Below, one piece after another: positions 5,628 through 13,445 of a stretch of 64,000 nucleotides of DNA. The position numbers were made by a program, and so were the translations under genes. Under the pieces are notes generated by a model. The model saw only the letters and a list, made by a program, of their open reading frames with translations, was not told the DNA's origin and made no database searches. Within the stretch, counting starts at the first letter, position 1. Each line of letters begins with the position of its first letter. The DNA lies in the sequence record PV662128.1. One strand, written 5' to 3'.

Positions 5628-5718
5628 AACCAAGATTCCTATTATACGTTAAAGAATTTTGGATCTATATCACCTTCTTGATGCACTAACCATAATCTTT
5701 TTTAGGAGTATTAACATC

Positions 5719-7296
5719 GTGAACGTTCGTGGCGTGAAAGTAAAAGCAGAAACCCGTCAAATTATTGATAACACCGTAGAGCTCGTTGCAACCGCGGTAA
5801 CCTCGACCATGGGCCCTAACGGCAAACTGGTTGTTATTGACGAAACGGGCAATCCTAAAATGACAAAGGATGGAGTGACAGTCGCCCGGTCCATTCGTTT
5901 GGATGATCGGGCAATGGACATCATCGCCAAGATGATCACCGAAGCCTCAATCAAAACGGATGCCGAATGTGGCGATGGGACAACAACGACGGTATTCTTA
6001 ACAAGGGCGTTTTATAATGCCTTTAAGGATAAACTGGATTTCATGACCAAACGCCGGGTGGAAGAGTTAACCAAAGAAACGATCGAAATGCTCAAAGTAA
6101 TGACGAAGGTTATTTCTCTTGACAGCCCAGTGCTTCACAATCTGGCGTTAACAACCAGTAATAACGATCTGGATATCGTGGATAAACTCTACGGCATCTT
6201 TAAGACCATACCTGATCCCATGATTGATTATCGTCGGGGTGTAACAGGGATTGACGAGATCGAATACAGTAAGGGTAAGGAATTCACAGGCGGGTACGCG
6301 CACCCCACTTTCACTAAAGATGGAAGTGGAAGCCCGATTACGATCGAATCGGGTTATGCATGCATCTTTGAAGGGAAGTTCAGTATTCTGGATGACGAGT
6401 CGGAGTTCCTGAAACTCTTCGATGAAATCGCTGGAAGAGGGTATCGTCAGACTATCGTGATCGCGCGTGAATTCGACGAGCACACCCTGATGGTGATGAA
6501 CAAAATGAATCACGTTATGCTGACGCAGAAACTAGTGGAGGAACCGGTTTTCATTCCTGTGAGGGTTCAGGCTATCGGAACAGCGGGCGTGGGGATTATT
6601 GGTGATATCGCAACCGTACTGGGGTTAAGTCCTGATGTGGACTATTTAGGTTGGAAGTCTCGTGACTATGAGGTGCGCTATATTGAAAACATTACGGTAA
6701 AGGGCGCTGTATTCTTTGTGGGTAGTGTATCCGATGAAGTCTCGGAACGCACCGCAAAACGTATTGGACAGATTAAAGATCAAATCGAGAATCTGCCAGC
6801 TGCTCAGAAGCACACCCCTTTGGCTAAGATCCTAAGGCACCGTATCTCTACGTTGATGGGTAACCGAGTGACGGTAACTGTTGGAGGAGAAACCGCTTCC
6901 GATATCAAAGAGCGTCTGGATCGCTTTGAAGACGTTGGGCGTGCAATCGCTTCGGCTTTGACTAACGGCGTGCTTCCTGGGATCGGGTATTCCCTGGCTT
7001 ACGTTGGTAATGAGTTGGTGAAGAAATATCCTGGTGATTCTATAGTGAAACTGTACGCCGATGTATTGGGCGAACAGCTTCACATGCTGATGGGTCGGGA
7101 ATTTAATGATCCTGAATTAGTCTATGTTAATCTGGCTACTGGGGAAACCGGTAAGCACCCTCAGGACATCAATGTCTGGGATGCGCAGTTAGCCACAGTC
7201 ACCGCATTAAGGGCCGGTGTCAGCACCGCCATCTCTTTGGCAACTACTGATACGTTAATTATCGGTAGTCGTGCGGGTGGTGCGGATATTCCCTGA
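5719..7296 (+). CDS. groEL: phage GroEL-like chaperonin
   Basis: STMGPNGKLVVID, TKDGVTVARSI, ATP-binding GDGTTT, VTVGGETASDIKERLDRFED, GVLPGIG; GTG start at 5719 after AGGAG (track start 5659). Confidence 0.93.
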   Translation: MNVRGVKVKAETRQIIDNTVELVATAVTSTMGPNGKLVVIDETGNPKMTKDGVTVARSIRLDDRAMDIIAKMITEASIKTDAECGDGTTTTVFLTRAFYNAFKDKLDFMTKRRVEELTKETIEMLKVMTKVISLDSPVLHNLALTTSNNDLDIVDKLYGIFKTIPDPMIDYRRGVTGIDEIEYSKGKEFTGGYAHPTFTKDGSGSPITIESGYACIFEGKFSILDDESEFLKLFDEIAGRGYRQTIVIAREFDEHTLMVMNKMNHVMLTQKLVEEPVFIPVRVQAIGTAGVGIIGDIATVLGLSPDVDYLGWKSRDYEVRYIENITVKGAVFFVGSVSDEVSERTAKRIGQIKDQIENLPAAQKHTPLAKILRHRISTLMGNRVTVTVGGETASDIKERLDRFEDVGRAIASALTNGVLPGIGYSLAYVGNELVKKYPGDSIVKLYADVLGEQLHMLMGREFNDPELVYVNLATGETGKHPQDINVWDAQLATVTALRAGVSTAISLATTDTLIIGSRAGGADIP

Positions 7297-7305
7297 TGCA
7301 TTTTA

Positions 7306-7728: not shown

Positions 7729-8697
7729 ATGCCGAAAATTAGTGGCTACAAAGAACATCCGGTAATAAAAAACCTTTTCATCCATCCTACGGAAGATAAT
7801 CACGTCCTGTATGTTAGGAAGAAAAAAGTATCTCGGATAAAGACCCATGTCGGTAAACGCGGATATGTGATTTTTACTATGTGGTTAAATGGGAAATCCA
7901 AGGGTTTTCGCTTCCACAAATTGAAAGCTGAAACGTATCTCAAGAAACCCAGTTCAGACCACACCCTAGTTGTCAATCATAAGGACCATGTTAAGATCAA
8001 TAACGATCTCGATAACCTAGAATGGGGGACTCAGAAAGAGAATGTCGATCATTCATTAAATATCCGTCAAAAACTTTTTCCCCTCTATCGGATAATGGAT
8101 TTGACTACGGGGAGATGGTGTACGGCCGGCAGTCGTAAAGGGGTGATAGAAATGCTAGCTTGCACCCACCGACAACTCTCTAACCATATTAAAGACCCTC
8201 GCTATCCATTGCTCTTCAAGTGGGAGGTAACAAGGAGTTCCACTTGGAATCTTTCAAAAGAGGATGTCGGTAGGTGTAATCCACGAGAGCTTCTTCCTTA
8301 CGTGGTAGAAAAGAATGGCGTCGTTTTTTACCTGGCTACATTAGTTGAAGTTGGTGAATTGACAAAGATTACTAAATACACGATTACAGTTGGTTTAAAA
8401 AATCAGCCGGTTCTGCATGCCAAGGGATTCAGTGTTCGGTTCATTAATTCCTATGAAGAATGGATGAAAACTGTTATTGAGAAATCTTATATTGATACCA
8501 TGTTGAATAGAAGTAAAGGAAATAAAAAACAGATTGAGGTAATAAACGCTCTTACGAAGGAAAAAACCACGCTGAACGGAATTATAGAGTTAATGGAGTT
8601 GACTAATTATTCACGATCTACCATCGACCGGGCAATGAAAAGTATGCGTGAAGACGGATGGGTGACTTTCAAAAATCTAAAGATAAGGTTTATATAA
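7729..8697 (+). CDS. free-standing HNH homing endonuclease
   Basis: VVNHKDHVKINNDLDNLEWGTQKENVDH (I-HmuI-like HNH); C-terminal NUMOD1-like HTH repeats; ATG 7729 with GGGG upstream; stop overlaps the tdk start (TAATG). Confidence 0.88.
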   Translation: MPKISGYKEHPVIKNLFIHPTEDNHVLYVRKKKVSRIKTHVGKRGYVIFTMWLNGKSKGFRFHKLKAETYLKKPSSDHTLVVNHKDHVKINNDLDNLEWGTQKENVDHSLNIRQKLFPLYRIMDLTTGRWCTAGSRKGVIEMLACTHRQLSNHIKDPRYPLLFKWEVTRSSTWNLSKEDVGRCNPRELLPYVVEKNGVVFYLATLVEVGELTKITKYTITVGLKNQPVLHAKGFSVRFINSYEEWMKTVIEKSYIDTMLNRSKGNKKQIEVINALTKEKTTLNGIIELMELTNYSRSTIDRAMKSMREDGWVTFKNLKIRFI

Positions 8698-9362: not shown

Positions 9363-9857
9363 ATGATGAGTCAACTTGTAAATATTCTGAGTGAACACAG
9401 ATCGGCGTTTATTTGGCCCACCAACATCCTTCAGTTAGAAGACGATTACTTTTATCTCTCGGTCAAAATTACGGAGAGTGGCGTGGTCAAATGTGTCTTC
9501 CGGAACAAGCTTACCAAAGACGTCCGTAAGTTAGACTTCTCTGATAGCATTTTTGATAAAGAGGGGCTATGGGATTATTTCAATGCGATCGGCAAAGAAG
9601 TCTACGCCATTGGGATTGACTACGGTAAAGGGTTCCAACTGAAAATGTTGTTTGAGCCGATTAAGGCGATGGCTACCGATCAGGCGCATAAGCCTTACAA
9701 CGGCCATCTTCCAAGGGACATAAGAACTCCGTTATTCTCTCCGGTCAATGCTCACAGCATTTATCTCGATGAAAACGGCGAGGTTACTCTAGATGGTTTC
9801 GAATGGGCGTCTCGTGGATTGCAATTAAAAATCATTGAAGAGCTCTTAATTAACTAA
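9363..9857 (+). CDS. hypothetical protein
   Basis: ATG at 9363 after AGGAG (track start 9297 is upstream of the SD). Confidence 0.7.
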   Translation: MMSQLVNILSEHRSAFIWPTNILQLEDDYFYLSVKITESGVVKCVFRNKLTKDVRKLDFSDSIFDKEGLWDYFNAIGKEVYAIGIDYGKGFQLKMLFEPIKAMATDQAHKPYNGHLPRDIRTPLFSPVNAHSIYLDENGEVTLDGFEWASRGLQLKIIEELLIN

Positions 9858-9900
9858 TTAATGTTATGCTAATTAGCTCATCACTGTAAAGAGGATTAAG

Positions 9901-10377
9901 ATGAAAAACCTGCTCAATTTAGTGCTCAAATTTTTTATTGAGCTTAACCCAGGCCTGGCCGTGCTGATGGAAGGTGGTTCGATCGTCAATGTGGTTGAAA
10001 AATCAGACATCGATCGTTACGCTGGTGATATCATGCGCCCAGACGGCACAACCAAGGTTCTGTCGGTAACCTGGAAACCGGGTACATTTAAAGGCGTGTT
10101 CGGTCTCGATCCAGCTTTCGCTCCTGTCACGCAGGATGAAGCCGGCACCACCGAAGGTATCTTCCTGAAGACCGACGGCACGCCTTACTTTGCGTTGACA
10201 GCTGAAAATGCCACCGAAGCCAAAATCGAAGAAATCCTCGGATATGCTTTCGAAGAAGGTACGGTCGCAGTAGACACCGAAACCAAAAAGGTTAGCTTCG
10301 CAACGTCTACCATCGTTGCTGAAGTCGATCTGGTCGTTATCGAAGCGGCTCCGGTGGCCGACGGCCAACTGCCGTAA
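9901..10377 (+). CDS. hypothetical protein, possibly virion-associated
   Basis: 158 aa, GAGGA upstream, Thr/Ala/Glu/Val-rich, codon usage resembling the structural genes. Confidence 0.65.
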   Translation: MKNLLNLVLKFFIELNPGLAVLMEGGSIVNVVEKSDIDRYAGDIMRPDGTTKVLSVTWKPGTFKGVFGLDPAFAPVTQDEAGTTEGIFLKTDGTPYFALTAENATEAKIEEILGYAFEEGTVAVDTETKKVSFATSTIVAEVDLVVIEAAPVADGQLP

Positions 10378-10385
10378 TAAGTAAC

Positions 10386-10419
10386 CTACTCCTACGTCCT
10401 TAACGGGGCGTAGGAGTAG
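10386..10419 (+). terminator. hairpin terminator (ACTCCTAC family)
   Basis: CTACTCCTACGTCC ... GGGCGTAGGAGTAG, 14-bp stem with one G-U pair. Confidence 0.75.
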
Positions 10420-10482
10420 TTCGTTAATTATAACTGACTTTTTTAATATATAACCACCAACGTTCATTTAGGACATAACACC

Positions 10483-10689
10483 ATGTTGTATAACGCAATT
10501 GAAGTATGTTTTATCGTAGCCTCTATTCTTTCCTTTATCTGGGTAATGAAGAAGAAAGGAACTGGGGCGATGTTAATTATTGCGTTTTCTATTGTTGTCG
10601 TGGCAGGATGTCGTTATCAAGATAACGCCGATACCGAACAAACTTTAGAACATCCAAAATATACCAAATCTAACTGCGGCTGCTTATAA
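10483..10689 (+). CDS. small membrane protein
   Basis: 68 aa, two hydrophobic segments, AGGA upstream. Confidence 0.6.
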   Translation: MLYNAIEVCFIVASILSFIWVMKKKGTGAMLIIAFSIVVVAGCRYQDNADTEQTLEHPKYTKSNCGCL

Positions 10690-10766
10690 GAGGAACTGAT
10701 TATGTTACCTTTAGAGTAAATAGAATGAAAAGCTCAAACTAGCCGTTATTCTTATCGGAGTTTAAT

Positions 10767-11906
10767 ATGTTTATTTCTAAGAAAGCTAAACTCCGACTCT
10801 ATAAAGAAGATGTGGAGTTAGTTAATAAGACCTTTGGTTGTCGGAGATTTGTGTGGAATCAGTTACTGGGTCTACATAAAGATCGTTATGAAAAATGGAA
10901 AGAGGATAGAAGCTTAGAGAAACCTAAAGTTTCTATTTCTATCTTTAGAGAGCAATTTAAACAGATTAGATTAGAATACCCTTGGTTAAATGAAGTAAGC
11001 TCTATTGCTTTATATGAGACTATTACCGATCTTTATAACGCCTTTCAAGGTTTCTTTAAGAACGGCAGGGGATATCCGAAATTTAAATCTAAACGAGGAA
11101 TACAGTCTTTTAGAATACCCTCTCGAGTCAACATGCAAATTTCAGATAATCGAGTTAGAATACCTAAGTCGAATTATTATGCGAGGTTCTCTAAAAATAC
11201 GGTTTTAAATGATCCTTCTTCCTATACGGTCACTCGGGATAACGTAGGGGATTATTTCATTTCTTTCGTAGACCAGATCGAAGAGATCGAACCCGAACCT
11301 GAAAGTAAAGGTAAGTTCGTAGGCATTGATTTAGGGATTAAATCCTTAGCGGTGATTAAACCGAATAAAGCGGAGCCCTGGGAGTTACAGAATCCCAAAA
11401 CGTATACCAAATATCAAAAAAGGAGAACGGCCCTACAACGTCGTTTAATGAAAAAGAAGGAAGGGAGTCAAAACAGAAATAAAGCCAGAATTAAATTAGC
11501 GAAGTTAGAACGTAAAGTTGCTAATATTCGTAAAGATCTTTTACACAAATTTACGACTACACTGATTAAAGAAAACCAAATGATCAGTATCGAAGATTTA
11601 AATGTAAAAGGGATGGTTAAAAATCATAGCTTAGCTAAACATATTCAAGATTGTTCTTTTGGTACGATTAGAACAATGCTGGAATATAAGGCTAAGCGTT
11701 ATACTCGAAATAAAACCATCACTATCGTTAATCGATTCTTTGCAAGCACCCAGCTCTGTTCTCAGTGCGGTGTTCTCCCTAAAGAACGTATCGGACTTAA
11801 AATCAGGAATTGGGTATGCTGGAACTGTGGGACTCATCACGATAGAGATATCAATGCAGCTACGAATATCCTTAACGAAGGAATTCGCTTAACTCAACCT
11901 TCCTAG
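10767..11906 (+). CDS. tnpB: TnpB (IS200/IS605 OrfB-family) RNA-guided endonuclease
   Basis: N-terminal KTFGCRRFVWN, GYPKFKSKR, RuvC-I VGIDLG, RuvC-II ISIEDL, Zn finger CSQC/CWNC, RuvC-III DRDINAATNI; all three catalytic acidic residues present. Confidence 0.95.
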   Translation: MFISKKAKLRLYKEDVELVNKTFGCRRFVWNQLLGLHKDRYEKWKEDRSLEKPKVSISIFREQFKQIRLEYPWLNEVSSIALYETITDLYNAFQGFFKNGRGYPKFKSKRGIQSFRIPSRVNMQISDNRVRIPKSNYYARFSKNTVLNDPSSYTVTRDNVGDYFISFVDQIEEIEPEPESKGKFVGIDLGIKSLAVIKPNKAEPWELQNPKTYTKYQKRRTALQRRLMKKKEGSQNRNKARIKLAKLERKVANIRKDLLHKFTTTLIKENQMISIEDLNVKGMVKNHSLAKHIQDCSFGTIRTMLEYKAKRYTRNKTITIVNRFFASTQLCSQCGVLPKERIGLKIRNWVCWNCGTHHDRDINAATNILNEGIRLTQPS

Positions 11907-12020
11907 GTTAAGGGTATTTACTTATCCCTACCCTTGGTCTGAGGGGAAGTTAAGCCTGCGGAGCCGGGTTGCAGTTAGAACCCCCTATGAAACAGGAAAT
12001 TGAAAAATATGCGACATTTT
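11860..12020 (+). ncRNA. putative TnpB omega-RNA (right-end RNA) scaffold plus candidate guide; boundaries approximate
   Basis: Directly 3' of tnpB: stems AAGGGTA/TACCCTT (11910-11935) and GGGTT/AACCC (11966-11983), and the GCCTGCGGAG...TGAAACAGGAA pattern with CCTG (11955-58) / CAGG (11993-96) complementarity typical of IS605 right-end RNA. Confidence 0.6.
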
Positions 12021-12308
12021 TATGATTTGCTCAAGGTTTGCAAAGAACTCGTATTCTCTCATACTTTCAACGAAAGCAATCCTGACAAGGGTTACTTCGA
12101 TACCTGGAAGTGGCGAAAGCTACTCATTAACGTGGTGAGCGTGACGTATAACACTCCTAAGCTTGCTGCGCTCACTCCACTCTTAAAGTCAATTTCTAGT
12201 AAAGAAGACGGGTTGACAATTTCCCCACAAACCGACAGCCAAGGACGGGTCACGCGAATCACTGTGACGCACAATAATAAATCAGTAGGTTTCAGATTCA
12301 AACGTTAA
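12009..12308 (+). CDS. hypothetical protein
   Basis: ATG 12009 (MRHFYDLL), in frame with the track's TTG at 12000; CAGGA upstream. Confidence 0.65.
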   Translation: MRHFYDLLKVCKELVFSHTFNESNPDKGYFDTWKWRKLLINVVSVTYNTPKLAALTPLLKSISSKEDGLTISPQTDSQGRVTRITVTHNNKSVGFRFKR

Positions 12309-12321
12309 AGGAATAAAGACC

Positions 12322-12894
12322 ATGGGATACATCGAGCTTAAACACGGAACTGATAAAGACTACGTTCCCTACCGCACCAACGACATCTACGAGTTAGATG
12401 AAGATATCGCCGTCTTAACCGACGACAGTCGGGTTATTGACGAAAATAAAGAAACCTACTTTTTTGCGCCAGGGGTAGACGCGGAAAATATCAAGGTTAA
12501 GGTCGGTGATATAAACCAGTTTTTACTCTTCTGGTCTGTAAAGGAAGGTGTCGAGGTTAGACTCGTTTCGTTTGGAACTGGGAGAAAAACTACAAAGGTG
12601 GTTGGGTTCCTCATGACCGAATTCCATCACCATTCCATTTACGCCAGCGTGTTCTCGTCTCTGTTACATCGAGAATCGAAAATGAATCTCCGTAGCAATA
12701 AGTTAGCGACGGGGATCATGTGTAAATTACTTCATCGTTGTCTCAAAAGTTTTAAGCTCCAGCATCCTTCACTTGGACGGATCTGTCTCGATATCGTATC
12801 TGATAATGGTGTTATCAAGTACGTTAACCAACACGGTAATTTTAGTGGATTGTATTATCGATTCAATCCAGGATTTAAACCAGAATTACGCTAG
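12322..12894 (+). CDS. hypothetical protein
   Basis: 190 aa, AAGGA upstream. Confidence 0.75.
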   Translation: MGYIELKHGTDKDYVPYRTNDIYELDEDIAVLTDDSRVIDENKETYFFAPGVDAENIKVKVGDINQFLLFWSVKEGVEVRLVSFGTGRKTTKVVGFLMTEFHHHSIYASVFSSLLHRESKMNLRSNKLATGIMCKLLHRCLKSFKLQHPSLGRICLDIVSDNGVIKYVNQHGNFSGLYYRFNPGFKPELR

Positions 12895-12902
12895 GAAAAA
12901 TC

Positions 12903-13445
12903 ATGTCTGATATCATCAGTTACAATAAAGCGCAGCTGGTTAATGGGTTCGAACTCGTTTGCCATCATCGCACCATTCACCTGTTTGAAGATGTTTTCGA
13001 AAAGGGCAGGTACAATAAAGAGTTCGTTGCTAAATTTGACGAGCTGGAAGTATTTTTGGATGTTCGTTACGCGATCATCTTAGGGAGAAAAGATAAAGAC
13101 CTCACACTGCATCTAATTCGCAGTAATGCGGCTCGTGAGATCGTCAGCTGGGACTATCATTACAAGTCCAATGATAACGGACTTGACAATTGGAAGATGG
13201 AAGCCATCGGCCAGTTTATCGTCAGTGACATGGAGCAGGGATATTTCTCCCTCTCCCCTGGTTATCGAAGCGATATCAACGACCTACTGACTTATATCGG
13301 TGGTCAAGAGAAAGAGGTCAATATTCGCAATACCGAAATCAGCGTCAGTGAAGGCAAATTTAACTTCGTCGGCCGTAACGGACAACTCGGCCCGGGTTTG
13401 TTGTCAGAGACCAAACCAGTTAACCTCATTAAGTTGTGGGCATAA
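12903..13445 (+). CDS. hypothetical protein
   Basis: 180 aa, AGGA upstream, ends at a convergent hairpin. Confidence 0.75.
   Translation: MSDIISYNKAQLVNGFELVCHHRTIHLFEDVFEKGRYNKEFVAKFDELEVFLDVRYAIILGRKDKDLTLHLIRSNAAREIVSWDYHYKSNDNGLDNWKMEAIGQFIVSDMEQGYFSLSPGYRSDINDLLTYIGGQEKEVNIRNTEISVSEGKFNFVGRNGQLGPGLLSETKPVNLIKLWA

Follow-up and report, generated by a model that had tools for sequence, protein, structure and literature searches.

The known role of TnpB is that of a helper: once TnpA has excised an insertion sequence (IS), TnpB restores it. We present here a 1,313-bp cassette of Raoultella phage VB_ZK_P1 (GenBank accession number PV662128.1; 257,087 bp), which consists of a tnpB gene and a predicted omega-RNA scaffold and lies at positions 10705 to 12017 of the 64,000-nucleotide stretch of that record analyzed here (the window). 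The cassette is probably independent of TnpA and, judging from its distribution and targeting geometry, behaves like a free-standing homing endonuclease gene. Its lineage is restricted to phages and has neither a transposase nor IS605-type ends. We infer cleavage, homing, RNA processing, and the repair route from sequence. A stand-alone TnpB acting in RNA-guided homing or competition in lytic phages has so far been proposed only in principle. No description of a natural example was found in the literature searched, and TnpB is not mentioned in two recent reviews of nucleus-forming and jumbo phages.

The 4-kb region around tnpB is 100% identical to VB_ZK_P1 and 93 to 95% identical to Klebsiella phages Miami, KPN8, YC1, and phiKp_32 and "Stenotrophomonas" phage BUCTxx100. 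VB_ZK_P1 is a member of the genus Miamivirus, family Chimalliviridae (nucleus-forming jumbo phages). Miami is the type of this genus, which the ICTV placed in the nucleus-forming Chimalliviridae in 2025 (PMC12451628). The GenBank record labels every gene in the region, tnpB included, "hypothetical protein," an annotation that is corrected here for tnpB. Window positions equal record positions minus 193,087. The features of the locus are as follows:

10700..10704, + strand, left flank TTATG, candidate target-adjacent motif (TAM; TTAT or TTATG), carried by all six empty alleles
10705..12017, + strand, inserted cassette, 1,313 bp, defined by alignment to empty sites, with the boundary ambiguous by 2 nt (TT repeat)
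10705..10766, + strand, left part of the cassette, 62 nt, of which only the last ~22 nt are common with the closest copy, L012
10755..10796, + strand, perfect 10-bp inverted repeat (TCGGAGTTTA / TAAACTCCGA) that encloses the tnpB ribosome-binding site and ATG
10767..11906, + strand, tnpB, 379 amino acids (aa), predicted gene for a catalytically intact RNA-guided endonuclease
11868..12016, + strand, predicted omega-RNA (right-end RNA [reRNA]) scaffold, 149 nt, spanning the last 39 nt of tnpB, with the 3′ end ...GACA
11966..11983, + strand, variable scaffold hairpin GGGTT/AACCC with conserved TGCAGT in the loop, bearing compensatory changes
12009..12308, + strand, downstream gene, homologue of Miami gp211, with its start codon now inside the right end of the cassette
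12017..12036, + strand, putative guide template, the first ~16 to 20 nt of the right flank, T followed by TTTTATGATTTGCTCAAGG
12029..12030, + strand, guide-target mismatch at positions 12 and 13, GC in VB_ZK_P1 and AG in the six empty alleles

Empty and occupied alleles

The tnpB site is empty in six sequenced relatives, in which ...GATTATG is followed directly by TTTTATGATTTAG (also written TTTTATGATTTAGTCAAGG) and the ATG starts the gene known in Miami as gp211. In the window, the left flank ends with ...GATTATG(TT) at 10704 to 10706, and the right flank resumes at 12018. The downstream gene originally started at the ATG at 10702 to 10704, which the insert has cut off from it and which is annotated as the gene start in the empty alleles. 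An earlier reading of the window from its sequence alone (the initial annotation) had named alignment with tnpB-less relatives as the means to define the insertion ends, and it is this alignment that gives the insert as 10705 to 12017. Because the insert has these ends, the guide would start at 12017 or 12018 (TTTTATGATTTGCTC...), position 12017 being the final base of the cassette or else the first of the guide. The initial annotation had set the guide at TTGAAAAATATGCGACATTT (12000 to 12019), about 17 nt too far left. That sequence is almost wholly the conserved 3′ end of the scaffold and not the guide, since the scaffold finishes with ...GACA in every copy (12013 to 12016 here) and the copies diverge from the next base. 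The more general proposal, an RNA guide read from the right flank, is supported at the sequence level.

Within the genome, the guide has no near-match other than its own flank, in front of which stands GACA in place of the motif. The empty alleles have motif and target side by side; in VB_ZK_P1, 1,313 bp separate them. Across the family, 8 of 10 empty sites have a TA-containing motif immediately 5′ of the sequence that the guide matches: TTAT at four sites, of which the tnpB site is one, CTAT or CTAC at three, and ATAC at another. We estimate that NTAY would stand at a given position by chance with a probability of ~0.04, rising to ~0.08 when a shift of 1 nt is permitted, so that 8 of 10 is far above chance. 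The two exceptions have CCAT and AAAT, and the "empty" allele available there also differs by a deletion. The suggestion that the guide targets the empty locus of relatives stood in part: the intact flank directly follows TTAT(G) in all six, an arrangement that would allow RNA-guided cleavage of the insert-free allele alone, with mismatches at guide positions 12 and 13. As for homing genes, the cassette is present or absent at one locus, and its putative recognition site is intact in the empty allele only, with the same caveat about positions 12 and 13.

Logan contigs of public metagenomes were aligned to positions 9600 to 13200. Contigs with the occupied left junction came from two samples, X1 (surface) and X2 (wastewater), and those with the exact empty joint, 10704 to 12018 (1,313 bases skipped, 2 nt ambiguous), from X2 and a further sample, X3. 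X2 therefore holds both alleles. In X1, cassette contigs have 0 to 6 differences from the VB_ZK_P1 copy (98.7 to 100% identity), the contig across the right junction differs 11 times over 226 nt, and flank contigs beyond it are 3 to 8% different. This suggests the same cassette in a diverged background. A metagenome scan with the target sequence returned one contig, an empty allele.

The downstream gene has an ATG at 12009 to 12011, preceded by AGGAA at 11994 to 11998, and its predicted product begins MRH-FYD... instead of M-FYD.... Since this ATG is in frame and follows AGGAA, the decapitated gene should still be translatable. Adaptation of the right-end ATG to this site was considered and rejected: ATATG is a feature of A-type right ends, and the identical ATATG is out of frame in the Miami and L012 copies. 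For the same reason, use of the ATG at 12009 appears to be opportunistic rather than tailored.

TnpB protein and omega-RNA scaffold

The protein scores above the cutoffs of Pfam families PF12323 (HTH_OrfB_IS605), PF01385 (OrfB_IS605), and PF07282 (Cas12f1-like_TNB). NCBIfam model guided_TnpB gives 301 bits (cutoff, 100). The best-scoring NCBIfam model is the "exception" model IS200_TnpB, at 337 bits, which is under its cutoff of 425, and IS607_TnpB scores below it. Residues 7 to 373 align end to end with the ISDra2 TnpB structures 8H1J and 8EXA (E value, 1e-57). The RuvC residues D188 (11328 to 11330), E276 (11592 to 11594), and D361 (11847 to 11849) correspond to ISDra2 D191, E278, and D361, and the zinc cysteines C331, C334, C351, and C354 (CxxC...CxxC) are present. 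All seven residues are invariant in an alignment of 26 clade members, which confirms the intact RuvC acidic residues and zinc finger reported initially. Between tnpB copies of the family, the ratio of nonsynonymous to synonymous divergence (dN/dS) is 0.09 to 0.23 with a dS of 0.5 to 1.4, values that indicate strong purifying selection. The phage backbones differ by only ~5%. From these dN/dS and dS values, the copies appear to be old and to have been kept functional.

The inverted repeat at 10755 to 10796 is possibly a translational brake on tnpB; its upstream arm is found in A-type copies only. An inverted repeat at the start of tnpB recalls the translational occlusion described in IS200.

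About 110 nt past the tnpB stop codon are common to all copies, and this noncoding stretch is more conserved than the coding sequence. It contains GCCTGCGGAG (from 11954) and TGAAACAGGAA (11988 to 11998), so the right-end RNA pattern that had been noticed downstream of tnpB is upheld and extends to every copy. A five-helix structure with 38 pairs is proposed for the scaffold. In 12 copies, 98.2% of its positions are paired, versus 36 to 61% when partners are slid by 1 to 3 columns. One helix has three compensatory pairs (GGGTT/AACCC here; AAGCT/GGCTT or GTAC/GTAC in other copies). A covariance model of the scaffold has a single match in the window, 11868 to 12016 (167.8 bits). Outside it, the model recognizes the corresponding place in phage EL (45 bits) as well as two dozen further phage TnpB loci. 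The size and position of the scaffold agree with those of the ISDra2 reRNA, which is ~150 nt long with its final ~16 nt derived from the flank (PMC8612924). A search of Rfam at an E value of ≤1 matched no family between 10000 and 13000, the group I intron of IStrons included. Scans of 10300 to 12400 for sigma-70 promoters and intrinsic terminators found nothing above chance, a result of limited meaning in a phage with its own RNA polymerases.

Transposase and IS ends

The initial annotation had found no TnpA gene in the window, and this holds for the whole genome. A hidden Markov model built from seven phage TnpAs, three of them Pfam confirmed as Y1_Tnp, detected no Y1 TnpA in the six-frame translation of all 257 kb, window included (best E value, 0.14). 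No IS607-type serine recombinase was found in the genome by phmmer with a single Pfam-confirmed query, a search of limited sensitivity (best E value, 1.7). The terminal hairpin is likewise missing, as first stated: no hairpin lies 3′ of the scaffold, and the sequence continues straight into the start of the open reading frame (ORF) at 12009. On the left, the distance from the junction to the tnpB ATG is 62 nt here and 4 to ~150 nt in other copies, and these left parts are only partly alignable. They share no hairpin, and none of the IS605 type is present. The sole left-side hairpin, at 10755 to 10796, spans the tnpB start, is subfamily specific, and is unlike the right-end hairpin. Subterminal palindromes that resemble each other at both ends, as in IS200/IS605 elements, were thus not found. 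Two canonical IS200/IS605 features, TnpA and paired end hairpins, were looked for and are missing. The picture is equivocal for a third, insertion 3′ of a fixed tetra- or pentanucleotide with no duplication of the target: a YTAY-like motif precedes most targets, yet the left junctions show repeats of 2 to 9 nt (122 bp in L098; just TT at the tnpB site) or deletions of 20 to 215 bp.

Among 185,579 bacterial and archaeal genomes (one per species), the nearest TnpB has ≤44% identity and is from Brevibacillus. The sole closer match in this set is on a phage-like contig of 1.7 kb, labelled "Spirochaetia MAG," in which the flanking sequences are Miamivirus DNA. Because this search gave no close bacterial relative of TnpB, no cognate host IS is in sight. 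A search of 5.8 billion proteins gave matches at 91% down to 46% identity, which form ~26 clusters, and all contexts inspected are phage-like. A scan of IMG/VR with the single TnpB protein found no relative; with an alignment of the clade, phage EL alone was close (54%), the rest being TnpBs at ~40%. In 7 of 80 more distant phage loci, a canonical tnpA gene lies directly upstream of tnpB.

Copies across the phage family

VB_ZK_P1 has three tnpB copies. Besides the copy in the window (A), they are found at record positions 174309 (86.5% aa identity; copy B) and 82177 (63% aa identity). The numbers of copies per genome are as follows:

VB_ZK_P1, 3
phiKp_32, 2
Miami, 1
BUCTxx100, 1
SKEH01000004, 1 (frameshifted)
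KPN8, 0
YC1, 0

The description of tnpB as an orphan is therefore correct within the window only; the genome has three diverged copies, and relatives have 0 to 2. Genomes and metagenomic contigs together give 12 distinct occupied sites on the VB_ZK_P1 backbone, at 28.1, 82.1, 88.6, 118.8, 130.4, 130.6, 131.6, 154.4, 167.9, 174.3, 198.7, and 203.8 kb. All 12 copies have the same orientation on this backbone and are co-oriented with the genes. The copies differ from each other by 10 to 30% in DNA sequence versus ~5% among the backbones, and for this reason each site seems to have its own old lineage, present or absent in the population. This presence and absence per site seems to be the pattern of phage homing endonuclease genes and not of recent jumps within a genome. 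The view that the nuclease is immobilized is not supported, given 12 sites in near-identical backbones, 0 to 3 copies per genome, and a tnpB site that is polymorphic in metagenomes.

Copy B (PV662128.1, 174102 to 175716) splits a gene that is a single 177-aa ORF in YC1, leaving fragments of 64 and 62 aa, with ~215 bp of the YC1 gene missing. The copy in SKEH01000004.1, a 252.8-kb assembled relative (L108, 2112 to 3265), is decaying, with TnpB split into 124 and 254 aa. At its site, upstream of a chaperonin gene, two other samples (L012 and L013) have an intact copy.

Junctions

Every copy has an exact right junction. On the left, the junctions are untidy, with the first 2 to 9 nt of the target repeated between motif and cassette in the following copies:

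this copy (A), TT
Kp32_1, CT
copy C, TATTAT
L097, CAATATT
L014, GAGGAAAT
L101, CATTATCT
L012, GTTAAAGAA

In L098, the repeat is 122 bp, and at other sites 20 to 215 bp of the target are missing. TnpA peel-and-paste transposition does not duplicate the target, and ISDra2 TnpB cuts 15 to 21 bp into it (PMC8612924). The left repeats of 2 to 9 nt are all below this cut distance. The untidy left junctions argue against TnpA peel-and-paste and would fit repair after a TAM-distal cut. They frequently fall within microhomology to the Shine-Dalgarno sequence or promoter of the cassette itself: in L014 the join is in the Shine-Dalgarno sequence GAGGAAA, and in copy C and L101 it is in a CTAYATTAT core. 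Kp32_1 and L109 have a common left part of ~96 nt at sites 250 bp apart, and Kp32_1 carries 8 nt of the left flank of the L109 site. In L098 (1791 to 3900), the cassette lies within a 214-aa gene and supplies a substitute for its last ~43 codons that is diverged and recoded. This replacement C terminus has ~70% DNA identity, the recoding extending across the target. Behind the right end, the original 47-codon end is retained and forms the guide template.

The motif CTAYATTAT with an upstream AT-rich tract (TAAATTTTTT-like) occurs at window positions 1845, 9304, and 26066 (+ strand), 25 to 80 nt before the start of a gene. Of 14 matches to CTAYATTAT in the whole genome, 11 are on the + strand, and 10 of these 11 are 25 to 80 nt before an annotated start. 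In the window, the 9-mer alone shows no significant enrichment (3 found versus 1.17 expected). Together with its AT-rich context, it is probably a Miamivirus promoter, and the case rests on this extended context. It stands in front of tnpB in several cassettes, and two cassettes lie within a resident copy of it.

Proposed mechanism and alternatives

The cassette would be transcribed together with the surrounding phage genes. The 3′ part of the transcript (~11868 to 12016) is predicted to fold into a TnpB-binding scaffold, and ~16 to 20 nt that run into the flank from 12017 or 12018 would serve as the guide. In a cell coinfected by an insert-free relative, TnpB would cut 15 to 21 bp into the target, 3′ of TTAT(G). 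Repair of the break from the occupied genome would copy the cassette in, as non-restorative homing. The occupied genome would be spared since its motif and target are 1.3 kb apart, and the right end would also supply a new in-frame ATG to the gene that loses its start codon. At the break, the right end may invade the donor beside the right end of the cassette and copy leftwards. The left end would keep the first target bases and be captured by homology, sometimes microhomology. Invasion on the right and capture of a left end with its target bases would explain exact right and scarred left junctions.

More tentatively, and at somewhat less than even confidence, we propose that Miamivirus, and probably Elvirus, has its own lineage of transposase-free tnpB and omega-RNA homing cassettes, which spread by cutting empty alleles, re-aim themselves by landing beside YTAY, and carry left junctions that are repair scars.

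Several observations weigh against homing by this cassette. All six known empty alleles have AG where the guide has GC, at positions 12 and 13, the border of the seed. In ISDra2, whose seed is ~12 nt, double mismatches at positions 1 to 12 abolish cleavage and those at 13 to 16 reduce it (PMC10097598). Given these mismatches, the six relatives may be poor or resistant targets; ordinary drift is a possible explanation, as private differences amount to ~3% across the region. The register of the motif is uncertain by 1 nt, because GACA is followed by T here and the empty allele has G. Three TTAT sites show G in the empty allele against T or C after GACA in the occupied one, and over the copies this base is T or C in eight and G in four. 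No tract of VB_ZK_P1-private differences hugs the insert in the 3 kb around the site, as coconversion would leave. The contrast between element and flank in X1 depends on one bridging contig from a mixed sample. The sole RNA-labelled run that holds the sequence behaves like DNA. TnpB must also be imported into the phage nucleus in order to act there. Finally, homing accounts for spread at one site and not for new sites with an exact right junction. One possibility is survivorship, in which only insertions with the flank right after the scaffold and with a motif can home.

One alternative is a nonautonomous IS200/IS605 element of the IS1341 type, moved in trans by a Y1 TnpA of the host or another element, with TnpB acting only restoratively. 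This would account for the exact right end of all copies, for IS200_TnpB as the best NCBIfam model (337 bits), and for a T/A-rich 4-nt motif 5′ of the target, like TTAC of IS608 or TTGAT of ISDra2 (PMC8612924). The seven distant phage loci with tnpA directly upstream of tnpB likewise agree with it. The phage genome, however, has no TnpA, and the bacterial genomes searched gave no close TnpB relative that could mark its source. The left parts, with 4 to ~150 nt before the ATG, have no common hairpin, and repeats of 2 to 9 nt (122 bp in L098) or deletions of 20 to 215 bp are at odds with a peel-and-paste process that duplicates nothing (PMC8612924). We therefore consider movement in trans unlikely.

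A second proposal, that TnpB is mainly a weapon rather than a drive, cutting insert-free competitors and lowering their yield by interference competition or marker exclusion while copying of the cassette is a side effect or absent, relies on the same targeting geometry as homing. It has a precedent in the intron-encoded homing endonuclease of PhiPA3, which gives an advantage against PhiKZ (PMC11620839; PMC12908238), and occupied and empty alleles do occur together in one sample. By sequence, it is inseparable from homing, and the mismatches at positions 12 and 13 of the known empty alleles weaken both equally. The same cassette beside a diverged flank in X1 suggests actual transfer, and the weapon reading seems improbable to us, to about the same degree as movement in trans. 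Less probable still is a decaying or inert relic, or a TldR-like nuclease-dead regulator, with no present nuclease function. The split SKEH01000004 copy (124 and 254 aa) and the GenBank annotation as a hypothetical protein would agree with it, but the triad and zinc finger are intact and invariant under strong purifying selection, the scaffold is conserved with compensatory changes, and the guide differs at every site, unlike that of a domesticated regulator with a fixed guide. The intact catalytic triad and the site-specific guides speak in particular against a TldR-type regulator, which has lost its RuvC catalytic residues and has a fixed guide. Homing independent of TnpA remains the reading that we judge probable for the cassette at 10705 to 12017.

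Comparison with known systems

The phage TnpB resembles ISDra2 TnpB (PDB 8H1J, 8EXA, and 8BF8) in its domain order, D-E-D RuvC triad, and zinc ribbon, and the locus resembles ISDra2 in its RNA scaffold of ~150 nt over the gene 3′ end and right end, with a flank-read guide (PMC8612924). It differs in protein sequence (~40% identity), in having neither an overlapping tnpA nor end hairpins, in its candidate motif (TTAT[G] versus TTGAT), in its location in a lytic jumbo phage, and in junctions that are not of the peel-and-paste kind. IS1341-type elements likewise encode TnpB alone (PMC13565253). Those, however, are ISs with defined ends, presumed to be mobilized in trans, while the left boundary of the phage cassette varies, target bases are repeated or deleted, and no TnpA-bearing relative was found.

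Free-standing homing genes of phages (T4 Seg and Mob; "intronless homing"; PMC13565253) are similarly small nuclease genes between or in conserved genes, present or absent in close relatives, co-oriented, and expected to cut only the insert-free allele. As with such genes, L098 travels with a resistant, recoded piece of its target gene. The cassette is unlike these genes and the PhiPA3 intron endonuclease (PMC11620839) in that recognition would be by a flank-read RNA and the nuclease is RuvC, not HNH or GIY-YIG. Since the guide RNA is read from the flank, a new insertion beside a suitable motif would re-aim the nuclease without protein evolution. A 2026 review proposed "transposon non-restorative homing" for IS605 on plasmids and named coinfecting phages as a possible arena (PMC13565253). 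The process proposed here is alike in that an insertion would spread, depending on TnpB and not on TnpA, to the empty orthologous site on a homologous replicon. There, it is experimental or theoretical and involves a complete IS, whereas the phage cassette, from a lineage without the IS machinery that it once had, would use it as its natural and sole mode. In nucleus-forming phages, an intron-encoded endonuclease already has a known use in competition (PMC11620839).

With a dozen sites and matched empty alleles in culturable Klebsiella and Raoultella phages that are nearly identical, the family is a tractable natural system. It makes testable whether TnpB can spread by itself when no transposase is present, how new guides originate, and whether a nuclease of phage origin gets into the phage nucleus. 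Should the proposal be true, the cassettes would document RNA-guided gene drive as it occurs naturally in viruses, and TnpB would be imported into the phage nucleus.

Neighboring genes and related observations

HNH homing nucleases in the neighborhood had been mentioned in the initial annotation, and one such gene is borne out: an HNH_3 endonuclease gene (7729 to 8697, + strand; 322 aa with a C-terminal HTH) lies between a small postchaperonin gene and the thymidine kinase gene. At this position, Miami has a terminator only and no HNH_3 gene, which makes this a second presence/absence nuclease gene ~2 kb from the TnpB cassette. The phage also encodes a Cpn60/GroEL-like chaperonin (window 5700 to 7300; L012, 5345 to 6922), as does phage EL. 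One TnpB site (L012 and L108) is directly upstream of the chaperonin gene. BUCTxx100 (OR529409.1), with the recorded host Stenotrophomonas maltophilia, has ~95% DNA identity in this region to the Klebsiella and Raoultella phages, and its host label or host range deserves a check.

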